A stretch of DNA of 64,000 nt from Oculina patagonica (Eukaryota), in NCBI RefSeq assembly GCF_052425735.1, contig NC_135771.1, positions 6,820,001 through 6,884,000 on the forward strand. Direction: 5' to 3'. The position numbers and the translations under genes were made by a program. This document shows, in pieces, positions 3,532-62,300 of this stretch. The notes beneath the pieces were generated by a model that was given only the letters and a program-made list of their open reading frames with translations, did not search any database and was not told the origin of the DNA. The first letter of the stretch is position 1, and every line of letters begins with the position of its first letter.

Positions 3532-3803
3532 ACCACAGACAAAAGTTGTTGGGAAGGTTGTAAAAATATACCCGATTACAATGAGGCTCGCGGAATTCAA
3601 CTCATAATGACATCACTTCTTCAGGTACTATTTAAGGACCCCTGCAAACTCCCCCCCCTCCCCCCTCCCCCTCGCTCCCCTATCAATGTTGTAACCTCAC
3701 TTTACAATTTGGGTTGAGTAAGGTTGCTATTAGCTTAACTTTGAATAGGGGAGGAAAGGGGAAGAACAAAAGCGCAAAGCTTCCCAACATTTTTGTCTGT
3801 GGT
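3532..3803. mobile_element. MITE-like element
   Basis: Terminal inverted repeats ACCACAGACAAAA...TTTTGTCTGTGGT, extending imperfectly to TGTTGGGAAG/CTTCCCAACA. Confidence 0.6.
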
Positions 3804-4380
3804 GTAGGTTGGAACCTTATCAAAGAATAACAAAGAATGTCGATCAAAGAGAGTAAAGAGTAGCGGTAACCAAAATGTTTATTTCCTAGAGATTAGAGAG
3901 AGTGTTCATTCAACAACAACACGCTTTTTTGCATGGCCATAAATGCTACCATTCATCAACTTCTCATCTCCGAACTGTCTCTTTGGAGCTGTCTTTCATT
4001 ACTAAACAGCAGTTTCGTTTTTTTCACTTGTAAGGAATTACTTTTGTATAATTTGGCTGTGTGCTCTGAGAACATCCCCAGTCTAAGCACCTTTAAGATG
4101 TTGATACTTTTAATTTGTTAAATCCTTAAGGGATAACAAGCACTTTTCCTCTTTAACTAAGATGTAAGATGTAGCAAGTTATTATAACTTAATAAATTAT
4201 TATTTATATTTTATTGCTGTATTGTTGTATGTTAGAACTTTTCAAGTTGAGTATAAATCGAGAAAGTTTGTTTGTTTGTTTGTTTGTTTAGTGATCAAAT
4301 CTGTTCTTTCTAGCTTCTGTCTCACAAAATTAATCAAGCTCTTTTGTTTCAAATAGTGAAGATGATGAGAGCATCAAAAA

Positions 4381-5852: not shown

Positions 5853-6181
5853 AAAATCCCCAAAGTGGTCGTCGCTGTTGTTATTTTTGTTCTCGTAATA
5901 ATTGTTATATACATGAGCCAAAGAAATGAAATGATGAGGGAAAAGATGCCAAAAGGAGAGGAAAGAAACGACTTTGAGTTACCGACATCTGAAGCGAAAA
6001 ATAACCCCAGTATGACCCAAGCCAGATTAGAGACAAGAAACGACCCTGCGTTATCAACATCTGAAGCAAAAAGTAGCCCCACCATGGCCAAAACCAGGTT
6101 AAATGTAAGTAAACAAACTTTCAGCAATTTAATTGAAAAGTACTGAAAGATGTAACAGTTACTTTCAACATTTAATTGAAG

Positions 6182-6437
6182 AATAAATAAAATAAATTAC
6201 TTTTATTACGATACGGTAATGTTTAAAGCTTGAAGTTTGTGGGGCCGTGTATTCCTGAACGAAATGGAATTTAGAAGTGTTGGTTTTTGCGGAGCAAGGA
6301 AAACCGGAGAACCCGGAGAAAAACACTCGGAGCAAGGACGAGAACCAACAACAAACTCCACCCACATGGGACGCCGGGTCTGGAAATCAAACTCGGGCCA
6401 CATCGATGGGAGGCGAGCGCTCCCACCTCAGCGCCAT
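6182..6437 (-). mobile_element. tRNA-derived SINE with Meta-like central domain, in the sulfotransferase intron
   Basis: Minus strand: A/B-box-like head, then TTTTTCTCCGGGTTCTCCGGTTTTCC and an (ATTT)-type tail; absent from the copy 3 intron. Confidence 0.7.
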
Positions 6438-8276
6438 AAAGAGTGGTCTATTCAAACTTGATTAGTCTATTAACCCAGAAATCAGCTACCTAAAGAAATC
6501 AGAACCTAGTCCCCTGGTCCTTTTAGCAGAAAAAGGTGCGAAAACCCCGGGAACGATGATGTAGAAATTATTTATTTTTTTTTTAATTATTATCGTTTTG
6601 AAGGGAAATGAAGCGGCTGATTACAAAGGCGGAGAAGCTGGCAAGAGAGACCTTGAACAAAAACAACAATTGAGACATTTCTGTGAAAACAGAAAGCATA
6701 AAGAACCGAGTGAGGAGGGTTTAAAGCACCTCTTCGTGTTTGAGAAATACAAGCTGATGTTCTGCCTTGTACCAAAGGTTGCAACCCGTCAATGGATGCC
6801 CCTGTTGGGGGGACCTGGGGCGTATGGCCCTACTGTGAATCAGTTTCCATCAGAAAAAGCACAGCAAATGCTTCAAAATTTCTACAAGTTCATGTTTGTA
6901 CGAGAACCTTTTGAGCGGCTTTTATCGGCGTACAAAGATAAATATGTGCATCCTAGACCAGTTGACAAAGATCCCTACATCACAGTGTATGGGAGAAAGA
7001 TTATTCAAAACTTTAGGCCCAACGCTTCCAAGGCAGATCTGCAGAGTGGTTACGGTGTGAAGTGGCCAGAATTCGTAGAGTACATAGTAAATGGAGGTGA
7101 AAAAGAAGATTGGCACTGGAAGACTTATGAGGATATCTGCGGGTTTTGCGACATTAAGTATGACTTTATAGGGCATTATGAAAATCTAGAAGAGGACTCT
7201 AAGTATGTTCTTGAGCAAGCCAACTTAACTCAGCTGAAATTTCCAAAAGTTCTTCCAGCAAAAACTAAAGATGAACTAGTACAGTACTACTCACAGATTC
7301 CAAAAGATTGGATAAAGCGCCTTTGGAACGTGTATCAAGGCAGTTTCGAGGCGTTTGGCTATCCTTTTCCCGGGCCCTTGGCAAACTTGTTAGGTTCGTC
7401 GTAAACGTTGCGTTTCAAAAATCTTCAGTTATACATTTATAGCACATGTTGTTATCTTATAACAGCAGTTTTGAGATATTAAAGTACCTTTTTTACAAGA
7501 TGTTGAACTCAATTTTATCACCAAATATTGTATTTTAATGCATTCGTGTATCTTTTTTGATTCGGGTGGTGTTCTGTATTGAAGCCGTATCAATGGTTGA
7601 AATTCATAAAATATTTTTCGCGCACGATTGGTATAAACACATAACGTGATACAGCCGTGATACAGCTTTTTCGACGGCTGCATGGTATATTGAAGGAGAA
7701 TGCCCGAGGCTAAAAATTGTCCAAAAATGAACAGTTGGCCAAGGAAGGAAGCTTCGAAAGTAACTGTGAAATTTTGATGACAATCTATCAGTCAAGGGCA
7801 CTATCCTTCAATATAACAGCAAGCCAGAAGGGGGTTTATTAATTTTATTAGCCTTCGAATAATTTCTCATTTTTAACACTGTGATTTGATTAGCAAGATA
7901 GACCTTAAAAAATGACTGTGTTTTGCACTCCTCTAAAAAATGGGGCCACGGATATCAAATGGGAAAACTAATCCGTGTGTTATGTCTGATACCCGTCGTC
8001 TGATTTTGTAACACGCATTGTGTTTTGTCCGATGAGATCATGCGGACAATTTATTGGTGGGCCAACAGATAATTTCCCCCAAGTGATATTCCCCAGTTTC
8101 ATAGTTAAGGTTGTATTCAGTCAGGGTATTGATAGGTAAGGAAGAAAAACTTGAAAGCTTCAGTTTAAGCCACTAAAAATTTCTAATTCTCTACACGACA
8201 AACGAACAAATGAAAAGTGATGTTCTTAACAGCATTAGTTATAATAACTAGCAGAAATAAAAACATTATTTTGGAT

Positions 8277-30240: not shown

Positions 30241-31861
30241 GGATATATTGTTAAGTTGGCACTTTATACTCGACCTCGAGAACTTTATTTTACAAAGTAA
30301 TAGATATGTGTCGTTAAAGACAAGTGCGTTTATATATTTAACAATGAGTGAAAATTGCGGGACCATTCTCGGCAATGAAATGCCAAAATTTAGGTGCTGC
30401 CGAATTGCACTTTTGAGGGCCTTAATCTGGAGCATAACCCCGAACCCCCCCCCCCCCCCACCCCCCTCTCTCTCTCTCTCTCTCCCTCTCTTTAGATTGT
30501 TATGTCCGTATTTGCTACTTGTTTTCCATATGCGTTTTTAAAGACTTAATTTGGCTTAAAAGTAGATAAAAAAAATTATCTCTATGAACATTAATCGCTA
30601 TACTTTAGTAAAATGTAAACGGCGTAACCAATTACCTTCTTTTTGACATTAAATTTTCCTCCACTAGGAGAACAACGTAGCAAATACCTACTTTTTGGTA
30701 CACGGTCCAAAAAATGTTTAAAAATCCGCGATTTAAGTAGATTCTGAAGGTCATTAACATTTAGACAAATTCCACAAAACTCCCCGGGTCATTTGAATAT
30801 TTTTTTGTTCTTTGGAAAGTTAATTTTCTTTTCAATACCTTGTTCTAAGCTATTATGTAAACTGCACCTGAAACTCTAAAAAAATTTTGCAAGCTGCAAA
30901 ACTTTATTTGCCTTTAAAAAGGCTTTTCTAGGTCTTTTCTTCACTTTTTCTTCACAGAAACTTGGCGCTTTGTTGTAAGAACTGCCTCGACATTGTTTGA
31001 GTCAAAATTGTTTTGTTTCAATGTATTTATTGACAAATTCTCATTTCGTCGCAAATACGGACTTTTCGTAGCAAATACCCACCTTTTTTACGCTACATCG
31101 TTTAAATAAAAAACGATGCACTTTCAAGAAGTTATATCAGAGGACGTGAAAAGTACAATTCTACCCATTCACGAATGAGTGTTGTTTTCTATTTTGGATC
31201 GAGAAAAAGCCATTTTTTTCTCTTTTTACGCGTTTTTAAGGGTTTTTGTGGAATAAATCCTTTTTTGCTCAATTTTTTCGGGATTCCTATCAACGGCACG
31301 TTGCGTCAGCAAATTAGAAAAGTGTTAACAGCTCCTGGAATGTTTCTGCGTATTTTGGACTTTTTTATTTCAAAAAAAGACGTCGTGTGGTAGCAAATAC
31401 GCACCTACGTAGCACTACGCACTTAGCAAATACCCACTTGGACTGATCATTGTACTACCATAGGCTTAACAAAAGCTGCTTATCCGAACAGTTGCATGGT
31501 AAATTAGTGTACATACCTTGCATATTAATATGCACTGTTGTGGTGTACCCTCTCTCTGTCCTACGTTTAATTGTTGCGTTACTAATGTGAACTCTCTTTC
31601 CTCGAAAGTTGGCGCTCTCTGTGTTGCATTTTACAATAGCATTGGGCGCCTTCTTGTTAAGTGTTTTCTTTATGTTGTGGTTGATTGTACGCAAGTACTC
31701 TGCGCTCGCTTTTTGTGTTATTTTGTACTTTAGTGCTTTTTACTGTATTTGTGTTGTGTTCGCTGGTTACGTCAGTGCAATATTGGTTTGTTACATTTAT
31801 TGCTCGTCTTGTGTTTGATCATCATGTCCGTGTGCGTGCCATGCGCTATATTTGTGTTACC

Positions 31862-32980
31862 TTTGACTATTACGTTAGTGCTATGCGCTGTTTTGTGTTA
31901 TTATTTGTTGTTCAGTTGTGTTTTGTTACGCAATGTATTTGTGTTCTGTTTGCATATTACGTTAGTGCTATGCGCTGTTTTTGTGTTATGTTTGATTGTT
32001 ACGTCAGTGCTATGCGCTGTTTCTGTGTTATGTTTGACTGCTAGGTCAGTGCTATGCGCTGTTTTTGTGTTATGTTTGACTGTTAGGTCAGTGCTATGCG
32101 CTGTTTTTGTGTTATGTTTAATTGTTACGTCGGTGCTATGCGCTGTTTTTGTGTTATGTTTAATTGTTAGGTCAGTGCTATGCGCTGTTTTTGTGTTATG
32201 TTGGACTGTAAGGTCAGTGCTATGCGCTGTTTTTGTGTTATGTTTGATTGTTACGTCAGTGCTATGCGCTGTTTTTGTGTTATGTTTAATTGTTAGGTCA
32301 GTGCTAGGCTCTGTGTTTGTGTTATGTTTGCTTGTGAGGTCAGTGCTATGCGCTGTTTTTGTGTTATGTTTGCTTGTTAGGTCAGTGCTATACGCTGTTT
32401 TTGTGTTATGTTTGATTGTTAGGTCAGTGCTATGCGCTGTTTTTGTGTTATGTTTGATTGTTAGGTCAGTGCTAGGCTCTGTGTTTGTGTTATGTTTGCT
32501 TGTTAGGTCAGTGCTATGCGCTGTTTTTGTTTTATGTTTGCTTGTTAGGTCAGTGCTATGCGCTGTTTTTGTGTTATGTTTGATTGTTAGGTCAGTGCTA
32601 TGCGCTGTTTTTGTGTTATGTTTAATTGTTAGGTCAGTGCTAGGCTCTGTTTTTGTGTTATGTTGGACTGTTAGGTCAGTGCTATGCGCTGTTTTTGTGT
32701 TATGTTTAATTGTTAGGTCAGTGCTAGGCTCTGTTTTTGTGTTATGTTGGACTGTTAGGTCAGTGCTATGCGCTGTTTTTGTGTTATTTTTAATTGTTAG
32801 GTCAGTGCTATGCTCTTTTTTGTGTTATGTTTAATTGTTGGGTCAGTGCTATGCGCTGTTTTTGTGTTATGTTTGATTGTTACGTCAGTGCTATGCACTG
32901 TATTTGTGTTATGTTTTATTGTTAGGTCAGTGCTATGCGCTGTTTTTGTGTTATTTTGATTTTCACGTTAGTGCTATGCG
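31862..32980. repeat. 42-bp minisatellite (GTCAGTGCTATGCGCTGTTTTTGTGTTATGTTTGATTGTTAG) with degenerate flanks ~31500-35500
   Basis: More than 20 near-identical tandem units; 14-aa periodicity in ORF 31749-32834. Confidence 0.95.
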
Positions 32981-35900
32981 GTGTAAAAAGTGTTATGTGT
33001 GATTGTAATGTTACTGCTATGCGCTGCTTTTGTGTCAGTCATGATTGATTGTTACATCAGTCAGTGCTATGCGCTGTTTTTTATTATGTTTGACTGTTAC
33101 GTCGCGCTAAGCGCTGTATTTGTATCACTTGATTGTTACGTTAGTGCTGTGCGCTGTTTTTTGCGTTATGTGTGATTGTTACGTCATGCTATGCGCTTTT
33201 TTTTTGTGTTATGTGTGATTTTTACATTAGTGCTGTGTCCAACTGTGTGCTGCTTTTGTGTGTTGTTTGCATGATTGTTACGTCAGTCAGTGCTATGCGC
33301 TGTTTTTGTGTTATATTATATTCATGTTACATCAGTGCTACGCGCTGTATTTGTATCATTTGATTGTTTCGTTAGTGAGGTGCACTTTCTTTGTTTTGTG
33401 TTTGATTATCACATTGAGATGTGTGCTTTCTTTGTGTTCTGTTTGTTTCTTTGTGATTGCCTGTTTGCACGTTAGTGCTACGCTCTCTTTGTGTAGAGTT
33501 TGTTACGTCACGTTAGAGCAAAAATTTGCGCTGTGTTTGATTGCTACGCTCGTACTTTGTGCTATGCTTGGTCTTAATGTTGTGTTTGCTTGTACGATAG
33601 TATTCTACACTCTTTTTTTCCTTTTTGTATTGCTATCGCTGTATTTGTGTTGTTTATTTGTCACGTAAGTGATGTGCATTCTTCATGTTTTTTTGTGATA
33701 GGCGCTTTCTCTGTGTCGTGTTTGTTTGTACGTTAGTGCTCTGTGCTTCCTTTTTTGTGTCTTTTTGTACGGTGATGCTATGCACTGTTTTTGTGTTGTC
33801 AGTGTTTGATTGTTACGTCAGTGCTATGCGCTTTTTTTTGTTTTTGTTTGTTCTTTGCGTTAGTGATGTGTACTCTCTTTGTCTTGTTTATTATCAACTT
33901 TGTTATGTGCGCTTTTTCTGTGTTGTGTGTTTCTGTTTGTAATGCTCTTTTTGTGTTGTTTGTTTGTTTTCATAGCACAAACGCAAAGACTAAAAAAACT
34001 TACCAAACTTTTGTAAGTGTTATGCGTTTAATGCGTACGATAGTGCACAGCGCTCTCTTTGTTATGTGTCTTGAATGTTAGTGCACTGTCTAGTGCGCTT
34101 TTTTTATTTTTTTGTTTGTCCCGTCAGTACTTTGTGCTGTCTTTGTGTTGTGCTATGTTCTTTCTTTGCGCTGTGTTTGATTGTTTGTTTGTACTTTAGT
34201 GTCATGTGCTTCGTTTATTTGTTTGTTTGTTTCCTTAGGGGTTTGCTCCTTTTGTCTTGTGTTTTACTGTAAGTTGTTATCTTACTGCTCTGCACAGTAT
34301 TGATGTAATGTTTGCTTGTTACGTTAATCCTACGCGTTGTATTTGTGTTGTTTGATTGTTTCGTCAGTGCTACGCGTTTCACTTGTGTTATGTTTGCTCG
34401 TTACGTATGTTAGTGGTTCAACATGTGTGCTAAGCGCTATTTTTTTTATTGTTTAGTTATTTATTTTTTCTCTCTGTCTTCAAGACAGAGACAGCAATTT
34501 TATTCAGTTGATAGTTAGGTTAGTGATGTGCGCTCTGTGTCTTCTTTGCTTGTTCGTCTATACATTTGTGCTGTTCTCTCTTTGTGTTGTTGTCGTTAGT
34601 TACTGTATGGTAGTGCTATGCGCTGTGTTTGTTACATGTTGATTGTTACGTTATTGAAGTGCGCTTCTTGTATTGTATTTGTCTGTTACGTTTGTGATGT
34701 GCGTTCTCTCTGTGCGTTGTTTTCTGCTTGATTGCAACATTTTCGATGTGCGCTTGACGTGGGTGGTAAAAGCAAACGTATATTAGCGGATCAATGACAC
34801 TGATAAAAACAATAATTTTGAATTTTAATTTAATTTAATCCATTTTCACGTTCTGCACAATATAAACTTAAGATATACAAACTATAGAAAGAAAGAAAAA
34901 TACAGCTTCATAAGGAAAAAAGACGCAGTGAGGAAAACATTATTTGTGTATGCTCTTTGCGTTAGTGATGTGCACTCTCTCTTTTTTTTGTTTGTTTGTT
35001 TGTTTGTACGCTTGTGTGTTTTTTGTTTGTTTTGTAAGTGCTATGAGTGGCCTTTGTACGTTAGTGCACTGCGCTCGCTTTGTTGTATCTTCTTTTGAAT
35101 GTTATAACAGTTCTATACGCTGTCTGTGTTGTGCTTGTTTGTCCCGTCATTGCTTTGTGCTGTCGTTGTAGTTTGCTATGTTCTTTCTTTGTGTCGTGTT
35201 TTTTGTTTGTTTGTACGTTGGTATTATGTGTTTTGTTTGTTTGTTGTTGTTTTTTCTGTTTCGTCAGTGCTATGCACTGTCTGTGTTGGGTTTGATTTAT
35301 TGTCCTTTATTGCTACGCTACTTTTTGTGTTGTTGTTCAGTTGTTTTTTTTAAGTTAGTTCCACGTGTCTCTGTTGTGTTTTACGTCTGTCTTTGTGTTT
35401 TATCTGGTTATGTCAGCACATTGCGCTGGCCTTACTTTTTGCTAGTTCGTACTCCTACGCGTTGTCTGTGTTATTTGTGTTTTTAGTGTTACGACCTGTC
35501 TATCTATTGTCCTTGTTTGAACCTTTGTTCTCTCTTTCTGAAATGATTTTTCTTTAAGTAACTTCGTGAGGATTTTTGCTTTTCTTTTGTTTGTTCATTA
35601 GTTTATACATTGACTTCTTGTTTGCTTGTTTTTTTTGTTTGAACTCCAGTGTTACTGCTTTTCGGGTGTATTTATTTGCAATATACGCGAATAGTCATCG
35701 CTTTTAATCTGCTCGTTAAAATGTTCTAGTGTTTTCAAGCTAAAAAAGCAACAACAAACAAATGCGAAGGGTATATGCGTATGTTAAATTTCACTACGTT
35801 AGTACTAGTTGCTTTATGTTTGCTTTTCTCGTTAGTTGTGCCTGCGTCCTCTCTTCATTCAGTAATTTACTTTTGGTCAAGTACAGCGCCTTTTACCTCA

Positions 35901-40995: not shown

Positions 40996-41495
40996 NNNNN
41001 NNNNNNNNNNNNNNNNNNNNNNNNNNNNNNNNNNNNNNNNNNNNNNNNNNNNNNNNNNNNNNNNNNNNNNNNNNNNNNNNNNNNNNNNNNNNNNNNNNNN
41101 NNNNNNNNNNNNNNNNNNNNNNNNNNNNNNNNNNNNNNNNNNNNNNNNNNNNNNNNNNNNNNNNNNNNNNNNNNNNNNNNNNNNNNNNNNNNNNNNNNNN
41201 NNNNNNNNNNNNNNNNNNNNNNNNNNNNNNNNNNNNNNNNNNNNNNNNNNNNNNNNNNNNNNNNNNNNNNNNNNNNNNNNNNNNNNNNNNNNNNNNNNNN
41301 NNNNNNNNNNNNNNNNNNNNNNNNNNNNNNNNNNNNNNNNNNNNNNNNNNNNNNNNNNNNNNNNNNNNNNNNNNNNNNNNNNNNNNNNNNNNNNNNNNNN
41401 NNNNNNNNNNNNNNNNNNNNNNNNNNNNNNNNNNNNNNNNNNNNNNNNNNNNNNNNNNNNNNNNNNNNNNNNNNNNNNNNNNNNNNNNNNNNNNN
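40996..41495. other. Assembly gap (500 N)
   Basis: Run of N of round placeholder length. Confidence 1.
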
Positions 41496-43619
41496 GCAGG
41501 CCTAAAAGCGGAGCTCCCCACTAATTTAATTTTGACTAGAATTTAAACTGTAAATAATAAACTTTTCCCTTGATTAATTTTTTTTCTGAAGTTGCGTAAT
41601 TAATTATTGCCAGTTACTATTCGTGTTAGACGTCCGTGGACAAGCGCTTTTTTTCTGCCCGCTTCACTGACCGTTGGTTTTAGTCTGCGTTTCAAAAGTT
41701 CTGGTCGCGTGGTAATGTTTTTTGGCTCTTCGGTTTAACACTGTTCACGTGATGCCATTTTGGTTGAGACGAATAGTATGGGAGTATTCCGAAGTTATTC
41801 CGAAGCAATGCGAAGGCAATCCGAAGGCTATCGTGCGGCGCGAAAAAGAAAGTACTGGTCAGCGATCTCCACGAAATCCTCATCAACTGCAAGGTCAAAA
41901 GCTCGAAGCGGATGAGTTGTTCTATTTCGTGCTGCCGTGATGTATATGATCAACGACAGCAGATGGAAATTTTACACTCCCAGATTGAAATTCGATTTTC
42001 GCCATTCAAATGTTGCCACTATGTACGTGCCTGAGAGTAGAGCGAATTCTGAAAACATTTGATGTACTTTTATTGACTTGTAGGTTGAACTGCACAGGAA
42101 TGGAGGCCAGCATCTCGGTCGCTTAGCCGATTGCGCTGATTATCATTAGACAAGAAACCTCCGTGATGAAGTTTTTATTAAATGTATGTAACGAATTTTA
42201 TTTTCTCATCCTGCAATCGGTGAGTATCTGAAATTTTCTAAACTCTTTCAATTTTCCATCGACAATCACACATACGCGTGTTCTTGCAAAGAAACCATAA
42301 GCTGATTTCAAAGGAGAGCGCTTTTATAATCTTTTTCACTCCGGCGATTTAGCTCATAAAGAAATCCTTTTCTTTTATTCAGTAAACCGTTTTTGAAAGA
42401 TTCCTTGTTACGTTTCGCTTGCACTTAAATTTATGTATTATCTGAATTATCTAAATTATTTGCTTTCGTTGTATTTCTTTATATCTAAAATAAAACTCGA
42501 GTTTTTTATAGTTGAGTAATTGCAATTTTGGCGGGAATTACCTTGCCACCCGCGTTTATCGGCGATGGAGCTGCCGTATCTGCCACTTGCCGGACGGGTT
42601 GCTGCGGGATCTTGAGATGTGAGTAGACCACGGTTTTCTTTTTTTTATTATTTAATTTTAGTTTGTATTTTAGCGTTGTAAGAAACACGACTAATTTTTT
42701 AAAACTGTCTCCAATCGATTTGGCCAAAACTAGTACAATTATTTTAAAAGCCTATTTAAATTTTCTTTTCACACCGATCCCTCCTTTAGAGAGGACGCAG
42801 AAAAAGACAAACACCGCAAGAAAAGTTGCACGAAGAAAGCAAAACGCCAAGGAAATTACACAAACAAAGCAAGAAAATTATGCAAACAAAGCAAGAAATT
42901 ATACAAACAAAGCAAGAAAATTATACTAACACCGCAACGTCGCAAAAAAATTACAACACAAAAAATTTGACAAAACTGTTTCCACGCAGTACAGTCAAGA
43001 TACTTATCATTGAAAAAGGTTTGGGATTGTCGGCTTAATCGTATCAATGGTTAAATTAGTACATAAAATTTTATGCTAAAATTTATCGAATGTGTTTGTG
43101 AAGATATTAGATGTCAAGGATGTATAATAGTATCTGTATGGTCGGAAAGGAAAATTTTTAAATGTAAAGCCAATTTTAAAAAAAGAGGAAAAGAGGTCCA
43201 GGTCCATACGTTTTCCAAGCTCTTAACAGGAGTAATAGACCCTTCCACAGTTTCTATATAGCTACCATATTTAGTTTGTAATTTACAAAAGTTTCAGAAT
43301 GTCAACCGTCAAATTTTCGAGTATCAAACTCACAATTTTTCCATACATTTACTGTAAAATTTGCCGTGTTTGCCCCCCAACCAAGATGGCATCAGAAACC
43401 GTCGAAAGGTCTATTGTCAGGGAAGTTTAACTTAGTATAGTTGTTAAATACCTTGTATTGTTTTTTTTTTTAGAAACATGTAACTGTTAACCGTTTGTTT
43501 TTTAACATGTGCTGTACATTTTATATTCTTTCTTTAAAGCAAACTATCAAGTCATTCTGGGATTTGTTATATAACGTGTAATTTATTTCTAACCTGATTA
43601 TCTTTGCTAACAAAGAAAG

Positions 43620-46600
43620 ATGAACAGCTACAGGCAACTTGCACATGACAGGTGGCTTTCCGCCAGACAATCCCAAAGTAAGTTTCTTTCTGGGAAAGGG
43701 ATATTGTTGTAACATAGTAAGAAAAGGTTTATGCATGACATGTAAAAAGGGTAAAAATTATACCATGGTGTGGGACAATAGGGCATAAAATTGATCGTGA
43801 TATAAGACAATAGGGCAAAAAAAAAAAAACAGATGACATGACATATGAAGGTAGCTTGAATTTATTACCTGATTTTAGAATATAATTCTGCGCTTTCAAC
43901 TTTTTGTGGCACATGAATTTGGTTAACATTTGTGCGTGAAATGGGGTCATGACTCCCCCCCCCCCTACTTTTCTCTTTAACTTTTTTTTCCAGTTTTTAA
44001 GTGACCGCAATTTCTTTATGATTCCTGCAGATGATAATGGAAATTATGGGCAGCATGGTAACAATGGTCAGGTCCAGCCAAGGGGGGTAGTGGGATACCA
44101 ATATACCCGATATTTTTGCCCTGGGATACCTGAAAACTGCAAAAACGTTGATACCAAACAACTAAAATATTTTTATTAATTAAAAGTCATGTCTGATAAC
44201 AAAGGCCCCATGTGTCAAGGCCCCTTTTCCGAGGTGGGACTCTCCCAGAGAATGCAGAGAGTTTGAAATCTGGAAGATTGAAAATGCAAATTCCAGCATT
44301 CTGGGCATAAAAAAATCCTGTTGATGATGTGTCATAATCATATAAGTGGCTTATAACTATCTTTTGTCATTAAACATTTAAACTCCTTTTCATGTGCACA
44401 AACAATAAGTTTTGCATTTGCAAACAACCTTTTTCAGGAGTTTTGATCCTCTCCTCCGAAACAAAAACAATGGCCCTAATCCCTAATAACAGCTTTGAAA
44501 AGGACACCCCCTGGATGTTTTCCAGTTTTTAAGTGACCACCATTTCTTTATGATTACTGCAGATCGTTATGGAAACAATGACCGTGGAAACAATGGTGAG
44601 TGTTTGAATGACGCAATATATCTTTATAACTAATGTTTTCCAGTCTTTAAGTGACCGCAATAATATTTATTTCTTTATGATTACTGCAGAGCATTATGGA
44701 AATAATGGCCGTGGAAACAATGGTGAGTGTTTGAATGATGCAATATCTTTATAACTAATGTTTTCCAGTTTTTAAGTAACCGCAATAATATTTATTTTTT
44801 TATGATTACTGCAGATCGTTATGGAAATAATGGCCGTGGAAACAATGGTGAGTGTTTGAATGATGTAATATCTTTATAACTAATGTTTTCCAGTCTTTAA
44901 GTGACCGCAATAATTTTTTTTTCTTTATAATTTCTGCAGAGCATTATGGAAATTATGGGCGTGGAAACAATGGTGAGTGTTTAAATGATGCAATATCTTT
45001 ATAACTACCGGTAATGTTTTCCAGTTTTTAAGTGACCGCAATAATATTTCTTTCTTTATGATTACTGCAGATCGTTATGGAAACAATGATCGTGGAAACA
45101 ATGGTGAGTGTTTAAATGATGCAATATCTTTATAACTACCGGTAATGTTTTCCAGTTTTTAAGTGACCGCAATAATATTTATTTCTTTATGATTACTGCA
45201 GATCGTTATGGAAACAATGATCGTGGAAACAATGACCGTGGAAACAATGACCGTGGAAACAATGGTGAGTGTTTGAATGATGCAAAATCTTTATAACTAA
45301 TGTTTTCCAGTTTTTAAGTGACCGCAACAATATACCGTATTAAACGCCGGACCCCGATTAAACGCCGGCCTAGCTCGTATAAACACCGGGTCAAAATTGC
45401 TAACTGTTTAAATTAAACGCCGGGGGCGTTTGTTCGAGGTTCTGGCGTTTATTTGAGGTCAAGCTAACGAATCTATTCTTTTGAATGGCACTGCTATGAT
45501 ATTCTAGTAGGGTATGCTGCTTTGGAAATTTCAATAAACGCTCAAAGGAAAAGTCAGGCTGTTAACAACAAAATAAAACCTAGCTACGTGTTACTGTCTT
45601 CACGACTGACGCATTTCCTTTCTAACTTGTGTTAGTGCTCACAGTCGTTGAAATATCGAGGATCCCTCCTGCGTTTGTTTATAAGTTGGGGGAGGTCGTT
45701 TAAAAACAAAAAAGAAGTTGGCGGCATTGCTGTGTGTGAACTTAAAACTCTGTGCCGATAACCTCTACTTGCATGCTCCTTTATAGTTTACGTTCATATA
45801 CCCTTGATGATCTCTCTGTCACAAATCTTGATTGCAACATAAACATGTTCCATAATAATGTATTTTTGGTTAATAAATAACCTTTGGATACACATGCAGG
45901 GACAGTTTTTCGGGGCAGAATGAAGGGGGAAATCATTCCGCCTTGACAAACAGCCCTTTGGTCACGGAGATCGGTAACAAAAAGTCAATCTGAATAATTG
46001 ATAGAAAATTGCAGTCCGTTAATAAACGCCGGCCTCAAATAAAGGCCGGGTACACCAAGCCAAGTTTGAAATAAACGCCGGGGGCGTTTAATTGAGAAAA
46101 TACGGTAATATTTCTTTATTATTTCTGCAGAGCGTCATGGAAATAATGACCGTGGAAACGATGGTGAGTGTTTGAATGATGCAATATATCTTTATAACTA
46201 ATGTTTTCCAGTTTTCAAGTAACCGCAATAAGATTTATTTCTTTATGATTACTGCAGAGCATTATGGAAATAATGGCCGTGGAAACGATGGTGAGTGTTT
46301 GAATGATGCAATATATCTTTATAACTAATGTTTTCCAGTTTTCAAGTAACCGCAATAAGATTTATTTCTTTATGATTACTGCAGAGCATTATGGAAATAA
46401 TGGCCGTGGAAACAATGGTGAGTGTTTAATGATGTAATATCTTTATAACTGTTTTCCAGTCTTTAAGTGACCGCAATAATTTTTTTTCTTTATAATTTCT
46501 GCAGAGCATTATGGAAATAATGGCCGTGGAAATAATGGTGAGTGTTTAAATGATGCAATATCTTTATAACTAATGTTTTCCAGTCTTTAACTGACCATTT

Positions 46601-47672
46601 TCATTTTCATTACTTTGAACAGAAAGGAAACGCAAAGCAAATGCACAACAAAAGTGTAAGTCTTTTCCACTAGATAAAAAATAAGAGAGATCTATTATTT
46701 TGATTATTCAGAAATTTATACAATTCTGTGAAATAAAAGAAAAATGAATGTAGACAGCTGTCAAGGACATCTTTTAAGAGGTCATTCTTAACTACTAATT
46801 TGTTGCTCATTTGAGTTTCTGGCCTTTATTTTTTAAAAGCCAAACCTCTGGATACTACGTACAGATGAGCTTTTTGCACAATTCAGTTCCATTGAATAGA
46901 TCAACCACCTTAAAGTATTTCTAATAATGGCCATATATATTTGACTAGTCACATCAAAAACCTTTTTAGTATAATACCACACAAGTGAATATTCCTAATA
47001 TATGCATGCACTGATCAGTTAATTCAGAGGTAATAAGCTTTATTTAATACTGTTCACCTAACAGCAGGTAAAGAGAAACAAACTGCCTTTGTGTCGCTTT
47101 GTTTACCAAAAGTGATGTTTTGGTCTGCTAGTTATTCAACTTGTGTTGTATATACTAATACAATTGTTCACTGCAGTGTTGGTGAACGTGGTGGATATAA
47201 TTAACCTTGCATGCAGCTTCATACATGACTCAGTAAAATATTAATATGATCCACTGCTATTCAACTCCACTTCCGGGAATATTTGTTAATATTTGAAAAT
47301 CGGCAATTGCCTTTTGTGGCCTCCTGCTAGTCCCACTGATTATTAATACTATAGCCATAGTACTTCGGAGTTCAACTTGTCATGAAGTGTTGTCAAAAAT
47401 TAATGTGCCAGACCAGTGTTGACAAAAACATACCTTTCACATTAGTAATTGCAATTGAGCAGGGGATCGATCCATAGAGGCAAATGGTGGAAATAATTTA
47501 TGTTACAGTATGGTTAAATATGTTGCTTAAATTTTTGTTATTTTTGTTTTTAGTGAAATGCTTCTCTTGTGGTGGAGAGGGGCACATGATGAGGCAGTGC
47601 CCCTCAAAACGGAGACGACAGCATCATCAAAAGGAGAAACCAGCCACTGTCAACTTAAAATTTTTTCTTTAA
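43620..47672 (+). CDS. 201-aa Asn/Gly/Arg-rich repeat protein with C-terminal CCHC zinc knuckle; exons 43620-43677, 44031-44066, 44563-44595, 44690-44722, 44815-44847, 44940-44972, 45071-45103, 45202-45264, 46131-46163, 46258-46290, 46385-46417, 46505-46537, 46623-46655, 47554-47672
   Basis: All introns GT-AG and phase 1 (mostly G|GTGAGT...CTGCAG|A); the spliced 606 nt is open: MNSYRQLAHDRWLSARQSQN-DNGNYGQHGNN-[(D/E)(R/H)YGNN(G/D)RGNN]n-ERKRKANAQQK-LKCFSCGGEGHMMRQCPSKRRRQHHQKEKPATVNLKFFL*. CX2CX4HX4C motif. Confidence 0.75.
43985..46597 (+). repeat. Tandem array of ~120-130-bp exon+intron modules
   Basis: 11 copies of TTTTCCAGT..TAAGTGACCGCAA..ATTACTGCAG|exon|GTGAGTGTTTGAATGATGCAATATCTTTATAACTAATG. 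Confidence 0.95.
45335..46105. mobile_element. Tc1/mariner (pogo-like) MITE in an array intron
   Basis: TA|CCGTATT...AATACGG|TA ends; subterminal TAAACGCCGG repeats; absent from sister introns. Confidence 0.85.
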
Positions 47673-47712
47673 AAAATTAAAGAAAAAATTTTAAGTTGAC
47701 AGTCGCTGGTTT
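47637..47712. repeat. 36-bp-arm hairpin overlapping the stop codon
   Basis: Arms 47637-47672 and 47677-47712, one mismatch, AAAA loop. Confidence 0.9.
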
Positions 47713-47736
47713 TTTTGCTTACGAAATGAAATCAAG

Positions 47737-47979
47737 TTGAACTCATATGAAAGGCCTTTCAAAGTGAAGAAAATGGTGTTTTCATTTTCCTGATATCTTT
47801 CTTGTGCCAAGTTAAAGTTATGTTGCTTTAGTATTTAGTATTTGTCAAACTTATGACGTCATCAGTCACCTAATTTCCATAATACAAAATCGTTAATTAA
47901 TCTCTGGAACCAGAAAAGAAATCAGAAAAAGGGAAACTTCATCTTTCTTCATTTTGAAAGGCCTTTCATATGAGTTCAA
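47737..47979. mobile_element. Inverted-repeat element
   Basis: TTGAACTCATATGAAAGGCCTTTCAAA...TTTGAAAGGCCTTTCATATGAGTTCAA. Confidence 0.65.
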
Positions 47980-48802
47980 TAAGCACTGAGTTTAATAAGC
48001 ACTTTAATAATTAAACAAATTGTAAGTTTACAGTCAGAGAAAAAAATTAACAATTTTATGAAATCCTTGTATTTGGCCTGCAAACATTGCAACCTAAGGG
48101 GGACATGGTGCCCGGGGGGGTACTCAGGCTTGTAAATGACAGGGATGATCGAATGGAGGCAAAACTCATTACCCCTAAAAAATCCCTGAACCAAATGTAC
48201 CCCCTCCAAAAAAACCTTTTTCACCCAAAAAATTACTCACCAAATTCTGCAACCCAAAAAATGTCAGAATCGAAAATTTCAAACCCAAAAAAATTCCTAT
48301 CATCAACAAGCTTGAGTACCCCCTCTGGGAAATGGTGGGACCTTGACCTGAACATCAATCATTGCAAAAAAAAATAGCTAAAAACACAAAACTGCATTAT
48401 GTAACAAACTTAAAATAATTTGACATATCAATTGCTTGCAATTGGATAGCAGCCTTTGTGCACTTTTATACAAAATGTACAGATAAAGAGATTTTAGAGT
48501 TAAACAATCTGTTCTGTTATGGTACATCTTTAATGATTTTGTTTCACAGAACATTTCTGTACTTTTAAAATCTTTTGAGATCACTGCAACACCAGAAGCT
48601 ACAGTTTTATTAACCACAAAACCCCATGTCCCCCTCATTTGCTTGATATTTTTTATCATAAGTCATAATAATTAATTCTTCTGACTTTTGACATTTAAAT
48701 CATTGAAATTCGTAACTTTGAACAATAAATTGGACCATTCAGGTGTCTTTTCTTTTTAGTTTCTGGGATTTGTTCTTCACATAGTAGAAAAGCGTACTAT
48801 TT

Positions 48803-49388
48803 AACAAATGGTAAACGTCACAGTGTGCACTATTGAGTTACAGATGCACGCGGGAGGTTGCTAAGCACGAAAGAAGCGTAAGAGTCGCCCGAGGCGATAG
48901 CCGAGGGCGACTCTAGCTTCTTGAGTGCTTAGCAAACCTCCCAAGTGCATCTGTAACTCAATAGTGCACGCTGTGAAGTTTACCATTTGTTTTATAGCAC
49001 AACTTTAAGGTGATTTATTAGTTTCTTTGAGGTAAAAGTGCGCGCGCTTATTTGAACAATTGGGTGTAGTGCTCGCGTAAACGCTGACGAAAACCTAAAA
49101 GAAAAAAACAAACAATACAAAGTTTTGAATTATTTCAAACTTGCATTATACCTCAATGTCTTTCAGCATTGTGGAGAAATGGTTTTTCTTATGTTTAGCT
49201 TTTCAAATTCACAGGAAAATCAAGAAAACAAGTAAAAACTTGTGAAGTAGTGGCACTTTCTTGTGCCATGTCGCAACAAATCAGCGCGCGCGCTCAGGTT
49301 GAAGCATACGTCAGCGTGCACCCATGGGCAAATAGTAGACGCTAAATTAACCAATCAGAACGCGCGCTTTACTTTAGTTGTGCTATAA
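48803..49388. mobile_element. Composite element: 189-bp palindrome (48803-48991) abutting an IR-bounded segment (48992-49388)
   Basis: AACAAATGGTAAAC...GTTTACCATTTGTT; TTATAGCACAACT...AGTTGTGCTATAA. Confidence 0.7.
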
Positions 49389-50920: not shown

Positions 50921-51084
50921 ATACCTAATCGTACCTTTTTGGTACGCTTCGGTAGCATATCAGGCGAGTTTGGTCGAGCCATGGCTCGTATTTTGGCGAG
51001 ATGCAGTCGAGCCAAAATACCCATAGCAAGACCAAACGAGCCTGATTTGCTGCCAAAGTGTACCAAAAAGGTACGATTAGGTAT
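50921..51084. mobile_element. Palindromic non-autonomous element
   Basis: ATACCTAATCGTACCTTTTTGGTAC...GTACCAAAAAGGTACGATTAGGTAT. Confidence 0.75.
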
Positions 51085-56519: not shown

Positions 56520-59310
56520 GTCAATGTAGAGGCAAAGTTTCCTGTCATAGTGAAGCCCCTTTTCTTCCCTTAAGTTTCTCCCTTAAGTTTAATTGAGAAT
56601 GTATCATTAAACAGTTTCTTTAAGATGCCCCCTGTCATCATTCAAACAATCACCATTTAGTATGTCCACTGCCATATGTATTCATGCCTGCAGTAATAAA
56701 AAAAAGTTGGTCACTTAATAACTGAAAAAGAAGTTATAAAGATATTGCATCATTCAAACACTCACCATATATTGTCTCCACGGTCATTATTTCCAAAACG
56801 CTCTGCAGTAATAAGTAAAGAAATTGCTCTGATCTGCATACAATCCACAATTTTGTTAGCCCTGAAAAAGTTAACAAGTGTAGATCAAATTATTGTTCTA
56901 TAACGTAACTGAGGAAGATTCAATAGCATCTTGAAAAGTGTTTTAAAGAGCTATGGCTATGAAAAAGACATAATAATAATGATTAAATTTGTCCCTTAAG
57001 TTTAATTGAGAATGCATCACTACACATTTTCTTTAGGACCCTGCCTGCCTCAAATAATTCACACACTCACCATTGAGTATGTCCACTGTCATATGCCTTC
57101 ATACCTAGTCAGTAATCTGAGTATTTCTGTACTGCCATATGTATTGACACCTACAAAAAATCAAAAAGAAAATTAACAGTTAATCACTGGACAAGAAGTT
57201 ATAAAAATATCTGATCCAAAAACATTCACCATTGAGTGTTTGTCCACTGCTATATGCATTCATACCTGAAGCAATCAAAAAGAAGGATCAGGAAACGTCT
57301 GTGCATTATTTTGTGACTGATCTTCATACGATTGTGTTAGACCTGAAAAAGACATTATAATGATTAAATTTCTCCCTTAAGTTTAATTGAGAATGTATCA
57401 TTAAACAGTTTCTTTAAGATGCCCCCTGTCATCATTCAAACAATCACCATTTAGTATGTCCACTGCCATGTGTATTCATGCCTGCAGTAATAAAAAAAAG
57501 TTGGTCACTTAATAACTGGAAAAGAAGTTATAAAGATATTGCATCATTCAAACACTCACCATATATTGTTTCCACGGTCAATATTTCCATAACGCTCTGC
57601 AGTAATCATAAAGAAATTTCTCTGATCTGCATACAATCCACAATTGTCTTAGCCCTGAAAAAGTCAACAAATGGAGATCAAATTATTGTTCTATAACGTA
57701 ACAGAGGAAGTTTCAATAGCATCTTGAAAAGTGTTTTAAAGAGCTATGGCTATGAAAAAGACATAATTATAATGATTAAATTTGTCCCTTAATTTTAATT
57801 GAGAATGCATCACTACACATTTTCTTTAGGACCCCGCCTGCCTCAAATAATTAATAATAATCAATAATAATTAATATTTCAATGTAGAGGCAAAGTTTCC
57901 TGTCATAGTGAAGCCCCTTTTCTTCCCTTAAGTTTCTCCCTTAAGTTTAATTGAGAATGTATCATTAAACAGTTTCTTTAGGATCCCCCTGTCATCATTC
58001 AAACAATCACCATTTAGTATGTCCACTGCCATATGTATTCATGCCTGCAGTAATAAAAAAAGTTGGTCACTTTAATAACTGAAAAAGAAGTTATAAAGAT
58101 ATTGCATCATTCAAACACTCACCATATATTGTCTCCACGGTCATTATTTCCAAAACGCTCTGCAGTAATCAGTAAAGAAATTGCTCTGATCTGCATACAA
58201 TCCACAATTTTGTTAGCCCTGAAAAAGTTAACAAGTGTAGATCAAATTATTGTTCTATAACGTAACTGAGGAAGTTTCAATAGCATCTTGAAAAGTGTTT
58301 TAAAGAGCTATGGCTATGAAAAAGACATAATAATAATGATTACATTTGTCCCTTAAGTTTAATTGAGAATGCATCACTACACATTTTCTTTAGGACCCTG
58401 CCTGCCTCAAATTATTCACACACTCACCATTGAGTATGTCCACTGTCATATGCCTTCATACCTAGTCAGTAATCTGAGTATTTCTGTACTGCCATATGTA
58501 TTGACACCTACAAAAAATCAAAAAGAAAATTAACAGTTAATCACTGGACAAGAAGTTATAAAAATATCTGATCCAAAAACATTCACCATTGAGTGTTTGT
58601 CCACTGCTATATGCATTCATACCTGAAGCAATCAAAAAGAAGGATCAGGAAACGTCTGTGCATTATTTTGTGACTGATCTTCATACGATTGTGTTAGACC
58701 TGAAAAAGACATTATAATGATTAAATTTCTCCCTTAAGTTTAATTGAGAATGTATCATTAAACAGTTTCTTTAAGATCCCCCTGTCATCATTCAAACAAT
58801 CACCATTTAGTATGTCCACTGCCATGTGTATTCATGCCTGCAGTAATAAAAAAAAGTTGGTCACTTAATAACTGGAAAAGAAGTTATAAAGATATTGCAT
58901 CATTCAAACACTCACCATATATTGTTTCCACGGTCATTATTTCCATAACGCTCTGCAGTAATCATAAAGAAATTTCTCTGATCTGCATACAATCCACAAT
59001 TGTCTTAGCCCTGAAAAAGTCAACAAGTGGAGATCAAATTATTGTTCTGTAACGTAACTGAGGAAGTTTCAATAGCATCTTGAAAAGTGTTTTAAAGAGC
59101 TATGGCTATGAAAAAGACATAATTATAATGATTAAATTTGTCCCTTAATTTTAATTGAGAATGCATCACTACACATTTTCTTTAGGACCCCGCCTGCCTC
59201 AAATAATTCACACACTCACCATTGAGTATGTCCACTGTCATATGCCTTCATATCTGCAGTAATCACCACTGAGTATTTGTGTACTGCCACATATGTATTC
59301 ATGCCTGCAG
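56520..59310 (-). pseudogene. Decayed micro-exon array paralogous to 43985-46597, in a ~1.36-kb higher-order tandem repeat
   Basis: Minus strand TTACTGCAG|AGCGTT(A/T)TGGAAAT..GACCGTGGA.ACAATATATG|GTGAGTGTTTGAATGATGCAATATCTTTATAACT four times, plus 34-38-nt G-M-N-(T/A)-Y-(G/S)-S-G-type exons; CAATGTAGAGGCAAAG recurs at 56522 and 57880. Confidence 0.7.
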
Positions 59311-62300
59311 TAATCAAAAACAAAACTGGTCACTAAATAGGAGCAACTACAGAATGCAGGGCCACTTCGGTCCACCGTGTCGGCACTCTTTACGGAACGA
59401 GGCATAACACAATAGAGGCTATTCTTATTCAATGACATGCAAATAAGTGGCCCTGTGGCCGGTCGCTTCAATGCATATCCTTTCGCCGCGTGCGAGAAAA
59501 TACCAAGATTATCGCAAGTACTCAAAGGGCCGATGGCCGACCGCTTCGCATTTGTATTCACCATCACGCCAATCTCCTATTCTGCATGGATTTTTTATAC
59601 TGTTGCGGGTAACAGTTTCCAAACCCCTTGAAAACGTTGTTTTTTCTGAGAGCAAGACATTCTCCTACCTCGAGTCTTCGTCCCTTCTGCGCAGGCTTGA
59701 AGAAACGTTTCCTGACCGCTGGTCAAAGGGAACGAAGACCCTGGGTACGAGGATGAGCTGTTTTCTAAAGCCCAGACTCCTCTCTCTATTTTAAGCTTGG
59801 CTACTAAGCAGTCATCATTCGCGGATTGATTTGTACAGTTTCGTATATATCTTGTTTAGAACTGTTAATCTTTAAAAATGATATCAAGAGACCATCCAAG
59901 TCAAAGATATTGTGTACTAAAACTAAAAAGGAGGTACGACAAATGAATTTTTGCTTTTATCAGAGTTAAATATTCATATTAAACATTGCAACAACTGCCG
60001 TATCTAGTTTTGAAACCGTGCTTGTTTGTCCTTATTTGTTTGATTATTTCCTTCTTTTTTCACTTGAAGTTCAAACTTAAGTGTTTGTTTTCGAAAACGG
60101 AGCTTCAAAATAGGGGTCCGGCTTATTTCCGGTGTGGCTTAAACAGGGAACTTTATGGTATTGACTGTACCCTATCGAACCAATAAGAAACAATAACACT
60201 ACCTAGGCCTGCTTCCGGATCCATTCATGATCAATCATCAATCAAAATCTTCACCTGTATAACATTATAATTAATAGTTAGTCAGTCTTAAACTTTTTTA
60301 TGGGGTAAAGTTCATAAATATTACAGACATGGTGAGCTACCATTTATTCGCCATTACTTGTTTTGACAAAATTATTGAAAAATAATAATTAATGTCTTGC
60401 AGCTGTCTGCCTTATTTATCTGTCTTTCTGACTATGACTATAACTGGTGTTAATCATAACTGGAAAAAAGTTAAATGAGAGCAAAAAAATGTATATACAG
60501 TGTATATATATTATCGCAAGTACTATTTTTAATCTATTGTACCTGTGTTTAGCGGTGCCAATCAAAATCATTGGTACATGTCTTTGCATTCGTGACTTTT
60601 ATCTGCATACTCCACAGTTGTGTTAGGGCTGAAATAATGTAAAACATGACATTTCCTTTAGGAATCTCTGAACTGATCCTCCCTCCCCCCCCCCCCCCCC
60701 CGGAAAAAAAAATAATCCAGTGACCCTACACATGATGGGTATGGAGATGTTCAAAATCTAGTTGCCCTTAGTACGGATGGTATGGAATATCCCACCGGTC
60801 ACTTGTATTTTCTGGGTTTCACTTTAGGTGAGTGTCCATAGTTATATACATGTACCATGAGAAAGTGTTGTATACTTTTATACCATGCCACAGAAAATAC
60901 GCTTACAAAATTTCGTTGAGAATAAGATGCCAGCACAAGATGGGAAGGTTCAGTTGAATACCGTTAAATATACAACAGCTTTCCAGTATTCAGAATGCTT
61001 TATTTTTTCTATGGTATAATATAATGATACAGTACAATCTTTAAGACACATTGTTATTGAATTGTCTGTACTTACTTTTTACTTTTCTTCAGCCATTGTC
61101 CTGTCAGCTGAAAACCTTTTACTGTATAATACCGGCATATCAATTTTTTTCTCTTGCAGATAACAAGAACCAATATTTCTATAATACAAAATGAAAATTA
61201 CAATGTCAAATATTTAAATTAAATGTATTGTTGCCATTACTCATGTCAGAACACCGCCAGAAAACTGATTTAAATGTCAGGTGTTGTCATTCTACTGAGG
61301 CCTTTTCACTTGTTCTAATTTCGCAAGGATTATTGCGTACCAGAACTTCATTTTAAGTGCTGTCGCTACTTTTTGGAACATTAGTCGTCTGTCAGAAGTT
61401 ACCATCGCCAGACCTCATGAAAATAATTGGGAAATTTGTGAAACATTGCAATTTGCAAGACAACTCAGTAAATTCGGCTCTACTCACATTGTAAAAACGA
61501 AACTTTGGCCACATTCTCCTCTTCTGTTAAGACACTGACTAGATGTGGATGTATATGTTAATTTTTCTGATCACTTTGCACACCCTTGCCATTCTAAATG
61601 TTTTTTTTTTTTTTAATTTTTTAATAGATTAAACATCCAAACACTTCTCCAATAATGTTTAACTAGACTCTTTGAACTGTTGTTTCCTTTATGCTTACAT
61701 TATACAAAATCTATTTTTAGCCTTTCTAAAATAAAACAAATCTTACCTTCAAAATTATTATGGCTCCAAACATCTCTCCTATGCTCCATTTTGTGGTTGA
61801 TATAGTTGTAGAATTAAACCCAAAATTTGAATTCTGGGTACTATAACTTGTAACTTAATTGGGAAGTAGACTTAGTGAAATGATTTCAATGAGAGTTTTG
61901 AAGTAAATTTTAACATTTTATAGACAGTTAAAGTATTCACTTGATCACTATCTTCTTATTTGGCTTCCATTATCCACATTGCTTTGTTTATTTTATCAAA
62001 ATAAATTAACATTTAAGTTTTCATTGTACTTTAAGAAACTTTAACTTACAATGATTGTTTTAAGCTTGTTCATTTTTCAAAATTATTTATAAGAGGGCCA
62101 CTAGTACTGTTTCTTACATATTTTACTCAATTACTCTTTAAGTAAGGTAGGTTGTTTCATTTTTTCCTCAATATGACTCATTCAAATGAGCTAGTTGGCT
62201 CCCTGTGGCTGGCACTTACTCTCTTGTCTCAGTTGCAGATCCAGACTTAAAGGTAAATGAGGGCCCGCTCTTGAAAACAATTTTTTTTCTCAGCCCTTCA

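Follow-up and report, generated by a model that had tools for sequence, protein, structure and literature searches.

Introduction

The micro-exon genes (MEGs) of schistosomes consist of 10–20 exons of 6–81 bp, mostly multiples of three in length, are hard to annotate, and keep a constant N-terminal signal peptide (PMC10526429). Tandem repeats of exons are also known from the schistosome lineage; transcripts with "tandemly repeated exons" are cited in the same paper (PMC10526429) and are resembled by the gene described here, which lies at positions 43620–47672 (+ strand) of a 64,000-nucleotide stretch of the genome of the stony coral Oculina patagonica (contig NC_135771.1, positions 6,820,001 to 6,884,000; this whole stretch is called the window, and its own numbering is used throughout). 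The locus is a real, expressed and spliced multi-exon gene, built of amplified exon+intron cassettes. As in MEGs, most of the coding sequence lies in micro-exons of 3n length (the ten used exons carry 360 of ~570 coding nt), ordinary terminal exons flank the micro-exons, automatic annotation fails, and the number of exons can, in principle, vary without a frameshift. The differences are equally clear: MEG proteins are secreted via their signal peptide, whereas the predicted coral protein has none, and MEG exons are mostly 15 nt long and heterogeneous, with introns of 0.1–5 kb, whereas the coral gene has near-identical 33-nt exons and introns of 85–98 nt. The coral protein would also end in a CCHC zinc knuckle, and the resemblance is one of architecture by analogy only.

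The classical cases of tandem exons are the 54-bp exons of collagen, the PEVK exons of titin and Balbiani-ring 3 of Chironomus. Symmetric exons that arose by internal tandem duplication encode disordered segments (Schad, Kalmar & Tompa 2013, PMC3632108). The coral array has in common with such arrays that 1-1 exons were duplicated together with their introns, that the product is of low complexity and presumably disordered, and that its length may be adjusted by copy number or splicing. Unlike in the classical cases, the unit is unusually small (a 33-nt exon and a ~92-nt intron) and very young, and the introns are better conserved than the exons. As regards the knuckle, the CX2CX4HX4C spacing, the basic flanks and an adjoining Gly-rich low-complexity segment are shared with retroviral nucleocapsid proteins, CNBP/ZCCHC13 and the plant glycine-rich CCHC proteins. 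Unlike CNBP-type proteins, which carry 4–7 knuckles, the coral protein would have a single one, and unlike the small CCHC binders it would have a low-complexity part rich in Asn, Gly, Arg, Asp, Tyr and His, and would lack RGG triplets as well as an RRM or cold-shock domain. Both the architecture of tandem symmetric micro-exons and the CCHC domain are known, and what is gained is a new example and not a new principle. Nothing specific was found in the literature on coral genes combining a zinc knuckle with tandem exons.

Architecture of the cassette array

The core of 43620–47672 is a tandem array in which a ~125-bp unit has been duplicated again and again, each copy comprising a phase-1 micro-exon of 33 nt together with an intron of ~90 nt. 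The parts of the gene model are as follows.

43620–43677, + strand: start-codon segment, 58 nt, ending in phase 1, encoding MNSYRQLAHDRWLSARQSQ, with donor GTAAGT
44031–44066, + strand: apparently decayed cassette exon, 36 nt, with donor GTCAGG, skipped in RNA
44563–46537, + strand: array of ten used cassettes, phase 1-1, encoding units [DE][RH]YGNN[GD]RGN[ND]
44563–44595, 44690–44722, 44815–44847, 44940–44972 and 45071–45103, + strand: first five used cassette exons
45202–45264 (63 nt), 46131–46163, 46258–46290, 46385–46417 and 46505–46537, + strand: last five used cassette exons
46623–46655, + strand: unique basic exon, 33 nt, encoding (E)RKRKANAQQK(L)
47554–47672, + strand: last coding exon, with the CCHC zinc knuckle (47559–47600), a basic KRRR tail and the stop

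Eleven cassettes were recovered in this region, all with the acceptor CTGCAG and ten with the donor GTGAGT, the remaining one (44031–44066) having GTCAGG. Nine of their exons measure 33 nt, one 36 nt and one 63 nt. Nine introns are free of insertions, with lengths of 94, 92, 92, 98, 98, 94, 94, 87 and 85 nt, and the two that carry insertions measure 496 and 866 nt. Adjacent cassette exons are homologous and in phase 1-1 throughout, and the whole 125-bp unit is repeated, intron included (92% matches). Tandem Repeats Finder outputs the array as 125–127-bp repeats with 92% matches. Spliced to 43620–43677, 46623–46655 and 47554–47672, the cassettes make up 606 nt that encode 201 aa, with the knuckle CFSCGGEGHMMRQC in the C-terminal part. 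The preliminary description of this DNA, made from its letters, had resolved what looks like a ~125-bp satellite into 11 cassettes of CTGCAG acceptor, phase-1 exon and GT donor, and had joined three unique exons to them in phase to reach 201 aa. All of the motifs, the exon lengths, the 85–98-nt introns and the two insertions were recovered, and the 606-nt open reading frame (ORF) with its in-frame knuckle was reproduced. That the exons are multiples of three and free of stops also holds, yet a second frame is stop-free as well: the cassette exons lack stops in two of the three frames, the proposed one included. Since the 11 pairs of splice sites are copies of one unit, they do not count as 11 independent events.

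The array is young, with introns ~5% diverged, and shows signs of higher-order copying, as three pairs of introns are alike, namely those behind the exons that start at 44815 and 46385, at 44940 and 45071, and at 46131 and 46258. According to the intron alignment and blastn, the intron downstream of 44031–44066 has had its conserved 5′ part replaced by a foreign segment of ~450 nt (44067–44517). The 3′ untranslated region (UTR) reaches at least ~47957.

Transcription and splicing of the locus

RNA-type contigs of four runs (X1, X5, X6 and X13), which come from four studies, were placed on positions 43400–47900; evidence of this kind shows the presence of a segment rather than its absence. The junctions predicted from the sequence are indeed crossed by spliced RNA, as GT..AG joints were found in contigs of all four runs. 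The joints 43677→44563 and 44722→44815 occur in four of the four runs, 46655→47554 in three (X1, X5 and X6), 46537→46624 in X1 and X5, 44972→45202 in X1 and 44595→46131 in X13. In addition, short loose ends of contigs at 44689, 44847, 44939 and 44972 match the sequence of the neighbouring exon exactly. RNA depth is 0 at 43702–43852 and 44004–44456, both in intron 1, in three runs, which indicates that the libraries represent RNA, without a signal from DNA contamination, and that intron 1 is efficiently removed. Retention is seen for the last intron (46656–47553, at ~15–25% of exon depth) and for intron 44596–44689, which is kept in one X5 contig. The mean contig depths of the start segment and the knuckle exon match in X1 (258 and 241), X5 (43 and 31) and X6 (102 and 75), which fits a single transcript across the whole model. 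The knuckle-exon contigs begin at 47554 and extend to 47746–47900 and beyond.

The transcripts differ from the first gene model in more than one respect. The 36-nt exon 44031–44066 is bypassed, exon 1 being joined directly to 44563 in all four runs, and depth is 0 over 44004–44154 in three of them. The main product would therefore be of ~189–190 aa (189 aa for the reference array) and not of the 201 aa that had been proposed, and 44031–44066 looks like a decayed pseudo-exon. At the joint into the basic exon, the RNA of X1, X5 and X6 has CTGG where the reference has A46623, a net gain of 3 nt which stays in frame and gives the peptide ..NN-AG-RKRK instead of the reference ..NN-E-RKRK. The string CTGGAAGGAAACG, which contains the CTGG joint letters, is absent from the window, and CTGG may represent an allele, an assembly difference or an unseen paralogue.

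These data also bear on whether the array could be a satellite, or the cargo of a transposable element, in which case the splice-like joints would stem from many transcribed copies of a repeat family and the locus itself would be no gene. The reads could stem from another copy, considering the CTGG at 46623 and the fact that cassettes 46131–46163 and 44940–45103 are missing from some runs, and the same cassette is indeed present in a second array 10 kb away:

56654–59346, − strand: sister array, with four copies of the gene's cassette in a larger unit with diverged exons

On the other hand, the unique segments 43400–43677 and 47554–47900 match the RNA contigs with 0–5 differences and are single-copy in the window, where blastn found no further copies of the start, basic and knuckle exons, and the joints tie these unique parts to the array at the exact predicted GT..AG sites. 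The cassette exon/donor pattern has 0 matches in metagenome contigs (241 million records), and no terminal inverted repeats, other element borders or large inverted repeats were found flanking the gene. With neither element borders nor second copies of the unique exons in the window, an origin of the signal from satellite or transposon cargo is rated low, and we regard it as highly improbable.

The zinc knuckle and the predicted protein

The knuckle CFSCGGEGHMMRQC at 47559–47600 has the spacing C-X2-C-X4-H-X4-C and is the only such motif in the six frames of the window. It matches the Pfam profile zf-CCHC (PF00098) at profile positions 2–18 of 18 with 30.2 bits, compared to a gathering cut-off of 20.8 (E = 4.2e-7), and the best matches among solved structures are retroviral nucleocapsid knuckles, with HIV-1 NCp7 at the top (E ~6e-7). 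Judged by its sequence, it is predicted to be a bona fide zf-CCHC. When 1.84 billion representatives were searched by HMMER with the knuckle exon (38 aa), the best 150 matches were generic multi-knuckle CNBP-like proteins, and there was no full-length match in a single stretch, a result that is uninformative on orthologues. The knuckle-exon peptide has no exact record among called genes, its back-translated pattern has 0 matches in metagenome contigs, and an Rfam scan of the whole window gave nothing. The gene is apparently lineage-restricted.

In our favoured reading, the mRNA is probably translated from the ATG at 43620 into a knuckle protein of ~189–190 aa with a hydrophilic repeat domain. 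Such a protein would consist, in this order, of a 19-aa head, a repeat domain of ~120 aa in 11-residue units, RKRKANAQQK, a single CCHC knuckle and SKRRRQHHQKEK, with a short tail at the end. At the N-terminus, MNSYRQLAHDRWLSARQSQ is charged and lacks a hydrophobic core, and the head is without a signal peptide. The 121 residues of the repeat domain are all D, E, G, H, N, R or Y, with no hydrophobic residue, and the whole product contains 24% N, 16% G, 14% R and 6% Y; a folded domain in the repeat region thus appears very unlikely from the composition. As a polyampholyte, the repeat is close to neutral, with Tyr recurring at intervals of 11 residues and Arg at intervals of 5–6, and, as in nucleocapsid proteins, the C-terminal region on either side of the knuckle is strongly basic. 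RGG/RG-motif proteins are characterised by clustered RGG triplets, or by RG dipeptides 0–4 residues apart. The predicted product has no RGG triplets and one RG dipeptide every 11 residues, RG-X3-RG-X3-RG arising only from the 63-nt exon. What had been called an NG/RG-rich low-complexity domain therefore stands as to its Asn/Gly/Arg composition, while "RG-rich", in a product that lacks RGG triplets, is to be read as RG dipeptides.

As for its function, the knuckle with its basic flanks would bind single-stranded RNA or DNA, by analogy with retroviral nucleocapsid or CNBP-type knuckles, and RKRK and KRRR fit putative monopartite nuclear localisation signals. The Tyr and Arg residues, set at regular distances in a spacer of Gly and Asn, would lead to weak self-association of a multivalent kind, and the number of cassettes in the array would set the number of repeats. 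Such a sticker-and-spacer layout is known from FUS-type low-complexity domains, and prion-like proteins that form condensates are characterised by phase separation that depends on concentration and is driven by Tyr/Arg stickers.

Coding potential and constraint on the frame

Translation of the spliced mRNA into a knuckle protein has to be weighed against the explanation that the locus produces a spliced, polyadenylated-type long non-coding RNA (lncRNA), or is a very young or decaying gene without productive translation. The ORF would then be open from recent copying of a stop-free 33-nt unit, and the in-frame knuckle exon would be an exonised fragment, for example of a transposon gag or an accessory gene. 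We consider this the less likely of the two, although it is to be taken seriously, as a number of observations weigh against a coding gene. They concern the 5′ and 3′ ends of the transcript, which involve the following features.

41496–43619, + strand: transcribed leader, collinear with the genome, which may begin in or before the N gap 40996–41495
43614–43616, + strand: probable alternative splice acceptor (AG/A), 4 nt before the ATG
47637–47712, + strand: near-perfect palindrome with 36-nt arms and a 4-nt loop, covering the last 12 codons and the stop

They also concern the divergence of the array itself.

Starting with the 5′ end, an X1 contig of 2410 nt and an X6 contig of 2020 nt extend 2101 and 1693 nt upstream of 43400. 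Both are collinear with the genome through 43677 and then enter the joint from exon 1 to the cassettes, with a mean depth equal to that of the knuckle exon. The RNA runs contain ~0.75 of the sampled words of 41500–43400, the same as DNA-like runs. The leader is thus at least 1.9–2.1 kb long in transcripts of three runs, and it holds 30 upstream ATGs, the longest ATG-started ORF among them being of 62 aa. So many upstream ATGs in a long leader argue against efficient scanning to the ATG at 43620 and would suit an lncRNA. Two donor-like GTGAGT sites are found in the leader, at 42220 and 42619, the first of them following a short ATG-started hydrophobic ORF (MKFLLNV...), as well as a 22-bp A-rich tandem repeat of 3.9 copies at 42848–42931.

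The start codon itself has a good context, which speaks for translation: there is an A at −3, and since an in-frame TAA lies 12 nt upstream, the ORF cannot extend further in the collinear form. The leader may also be avoided in one of the runs. Two X13 contigs have exactly 30 nt in common (43616–43645), and depth rises from 48.7 upstream to 257 downstream, which amounts to a branch between 43615 and 43616 and is the pattern expected of a de Bruijn graph where another sequence joins. The AG of this site is preceded by a pyrimidine-rich tract with CTAAC, and we infer that an acceptor at 43616 is used by most X13 transcripts. Joining 4 nt before the ATG, it could give a short leader. What had been taken for a first "ATG exon" is accordingly the end of a leader of at least 1.9–2.1 kb, or is entered via the acceptor at 43616 in one run.

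Towards the 3′ end, the stop and the last 12 codons lie in the left arm of the palindrome, and a pair of inverted repeats resembling miniature inverted-repeat transposable elements (MITE-like) follows the knuckle exon. Together with the nucleocapsid proteins being the best PDB matches of the knuckle, this speaks for an exonised transposon fragment. In X13, moreover, the depth of the 5′ part is not matched by the 3′ cassettes, the basic exon or the knuckle exon. Searches with the knuckle exon and the cassette pattern brought up neither an orthologue nor an annotated protein, the spliced whole protein not having been used as a query.

Evidence on constraint comes from the comparison of exons and introns among the cassettes. 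All of the observed changes in exon length are multiples of three, namely +30 in the 63-nt exon (45202–45264, by two additional units of 15 nt) and +3 both in the decayed exon and where RNA has CTGG for A, while intron indels among the cassettes measure 2, 6, 1, 3 and 1 nt. This speaks for a coding frame, but the exon indel events number only 2–3, so that the probability of all being multiples of three is ~0.06–0.16 under the intron size distribution, and the exon indel rate is about that predicted from the intron rate. The mean pairwise difference is 0.105 for the cassette exons and 0.054 for the introns, and the variable columns are 9 of 33 and 12 of 100, respectively (Fisher p = 0.053). At six of the nine variable sites in the exons, the encoded residue is altered. 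With exons about twice as diverged as introns and mostly non-synonymous changes, no purifying selection is visible, as an untranslated array would have it. Also in line with such an array, there is a second spliced ORF in frame +1 relative to the model (43646–47556, ~135 codons), which starts with MTGGFPPDNPK, continues through the array as (I/S)(V/I)METM(T/A/I)VETM repeats and has its stop as soon as the knuckle exon begins, in its first codon. Openness is therefore partly a property of the copied unit. Finally, the sister array is transcribed and has no open frame across it.

The earlier proposal that the frame is under selection could not be upheld, considering that the exon indels are too few, that their rate equals that of the introns, that the exons are the more diverged and that the sister array is frame-broken; the residues of the repeat seem to be under little constraint as the array evolves. 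In favour of translation, on the other hand, two more unique exons hold the proposed frame (frame A) into a Pfam-significant knuckle, for which the chance is ~1/3 for the last step alone, and expression is strong and consistent in four studies. On balance, the gene is rather likely to be protein coding.

Exon skipping and cassette content

The symmetric exons had led to the proposal that combinatorial exon skipping could, alongside cassette copy number, tune the valency of the protein. Each long-range joint was checked against repeat ambiguity. The joint 44595→46131 was rejected as a skip, being indistinguishable from the consecutive 45264→46131, and so was 44972→45202, which is equivalent to 44972→45071. 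The X6 joint into the basic exon (listed as 44722→46624) starts at an exon whose end resembles those at 44722, 44847 or 46417, and could reflect a skipped last cassette or a C/T polymorphism. All joints between used cassettes are consistent with consecutive splicing, and only the decayed exon is clearly skipped, which leaves the proposal without an example among the used cassettes.

There are hints that the cassette content differs among the runs: 46131–46163 is present only in X13 contigs, 46269–46721 and the knuckle exon are without matching depth in X13, and 44910–45211 is empty in X5 and X6. This could reflect differences in allelic copy number, a species difference or alternative splicing.

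Sister array

The sister array on the − strand has a higher-order unit of ~690–790 bp. Its cassette is identical to that of the gene over the first 33 intron bases, and the homologous exon is 37 nt long (+4, by an ATAT insertion), with diverged neighbouring exons of 34, 36 and 80 nt. One copy contains a 13-nt remnant 'intron' (GTGATTACTGCAG) between two exon relics. Unspliced sister-array sequence is found in RNA contigs, for example at an X6 loose end at 46364. The preliminary description had named homologous arrays whose exon indels match those of introns in rate and frame distribution as evidence against its reading, and the +4 exon does weaken the case for a general protection of the frame. 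It is, however, compatible with the gene array being the functional copy and the sister array a decaying one.

Two arrays of the same cassette also allow for a further reading, which we consider speculative and rather unlikely. The 125-bp unit would be a self-contained, splice-competent module that undergoes satellite-like amplification and seeds arrays at several loci, the sister array among them. Equally tentatively, it would then be the splice signals and the intron, more than the peptide, that are under selection, and the content of the array, which seems to differ among the four RNA data sets, would set the valency of a sticker-spacer domain joined to an RNA-binding knuckle.

Insertions and inverted repeats

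Two introns of the gene received transposon-like insertions at a later time, one of them being the following.

45334–46106, strand not assigned: transposon-like insertion, 773 bp, in the intron after the 63-nt exon, 24 nt before the 46131 acceptor

The element is bounded by a perfect 8-bp terminal inverted repeat (ACCGTATT), is flanked by AATAT on either side and contains many internal AAACGCCGG motifs. RNA depth reaches ~2,700–7,700 at 45967–46117, with many loose ends at the element borders, and internal-deletion variants are seen in RNA (joints 45468→45817 and 45368→46059). The very high depth and the deletion variants indicate that the element belongs to a large, transcribed, high-copy family. 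It was inserted after the amplification of the array.

The palindrome at 47637–47712 has an RNA fold of −49.4 kcal/mol (z = −12.9), and its sequence also occurs in RNA contigs. The present C-terminus may have arisen through it if it is a foldback insertion; alternatively, it may serve as a regulatory or small-RNA hairpin. The MITE-like repeats in the 3′ UTR (47737–47772 and 47944–47979) are 36 nt long, 97% complementary and 171 nt apart, and together with the palindrome they indicate that the 3′ end of the gene was shaped by insertions. Hairpin-like inverted repeats are also present downstream of the gene, at 48794–49000 and 50921–51084, with arms of 66 and 64 nt that are 86–89% complementary. 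Elsewhere in the window, 31836–33224 is occupied by a 42-bp satellite of ~33 copies (84% matches), in a stretch where the skews are extreme (GC +0.32, AT −0.56).

Significance

What repeat-maskers and gene predictors would class as a 125-bp satellite is a correctly spliced gene with abundant transcripts, which shows how micro-exon genes get missed. If the protein is made, the locus would be a clean natural system for the origin of the length of a low-complexity domain through duplication of exon+intron cassettes, and would suit the question of how repeat length affects an RNA-binding protein, with the sister array nearby for comparison. Should the 125-bp unit prove to be a self-contained module, corals would possess a fast-evolving family of condensate proteins tunable by copy number.

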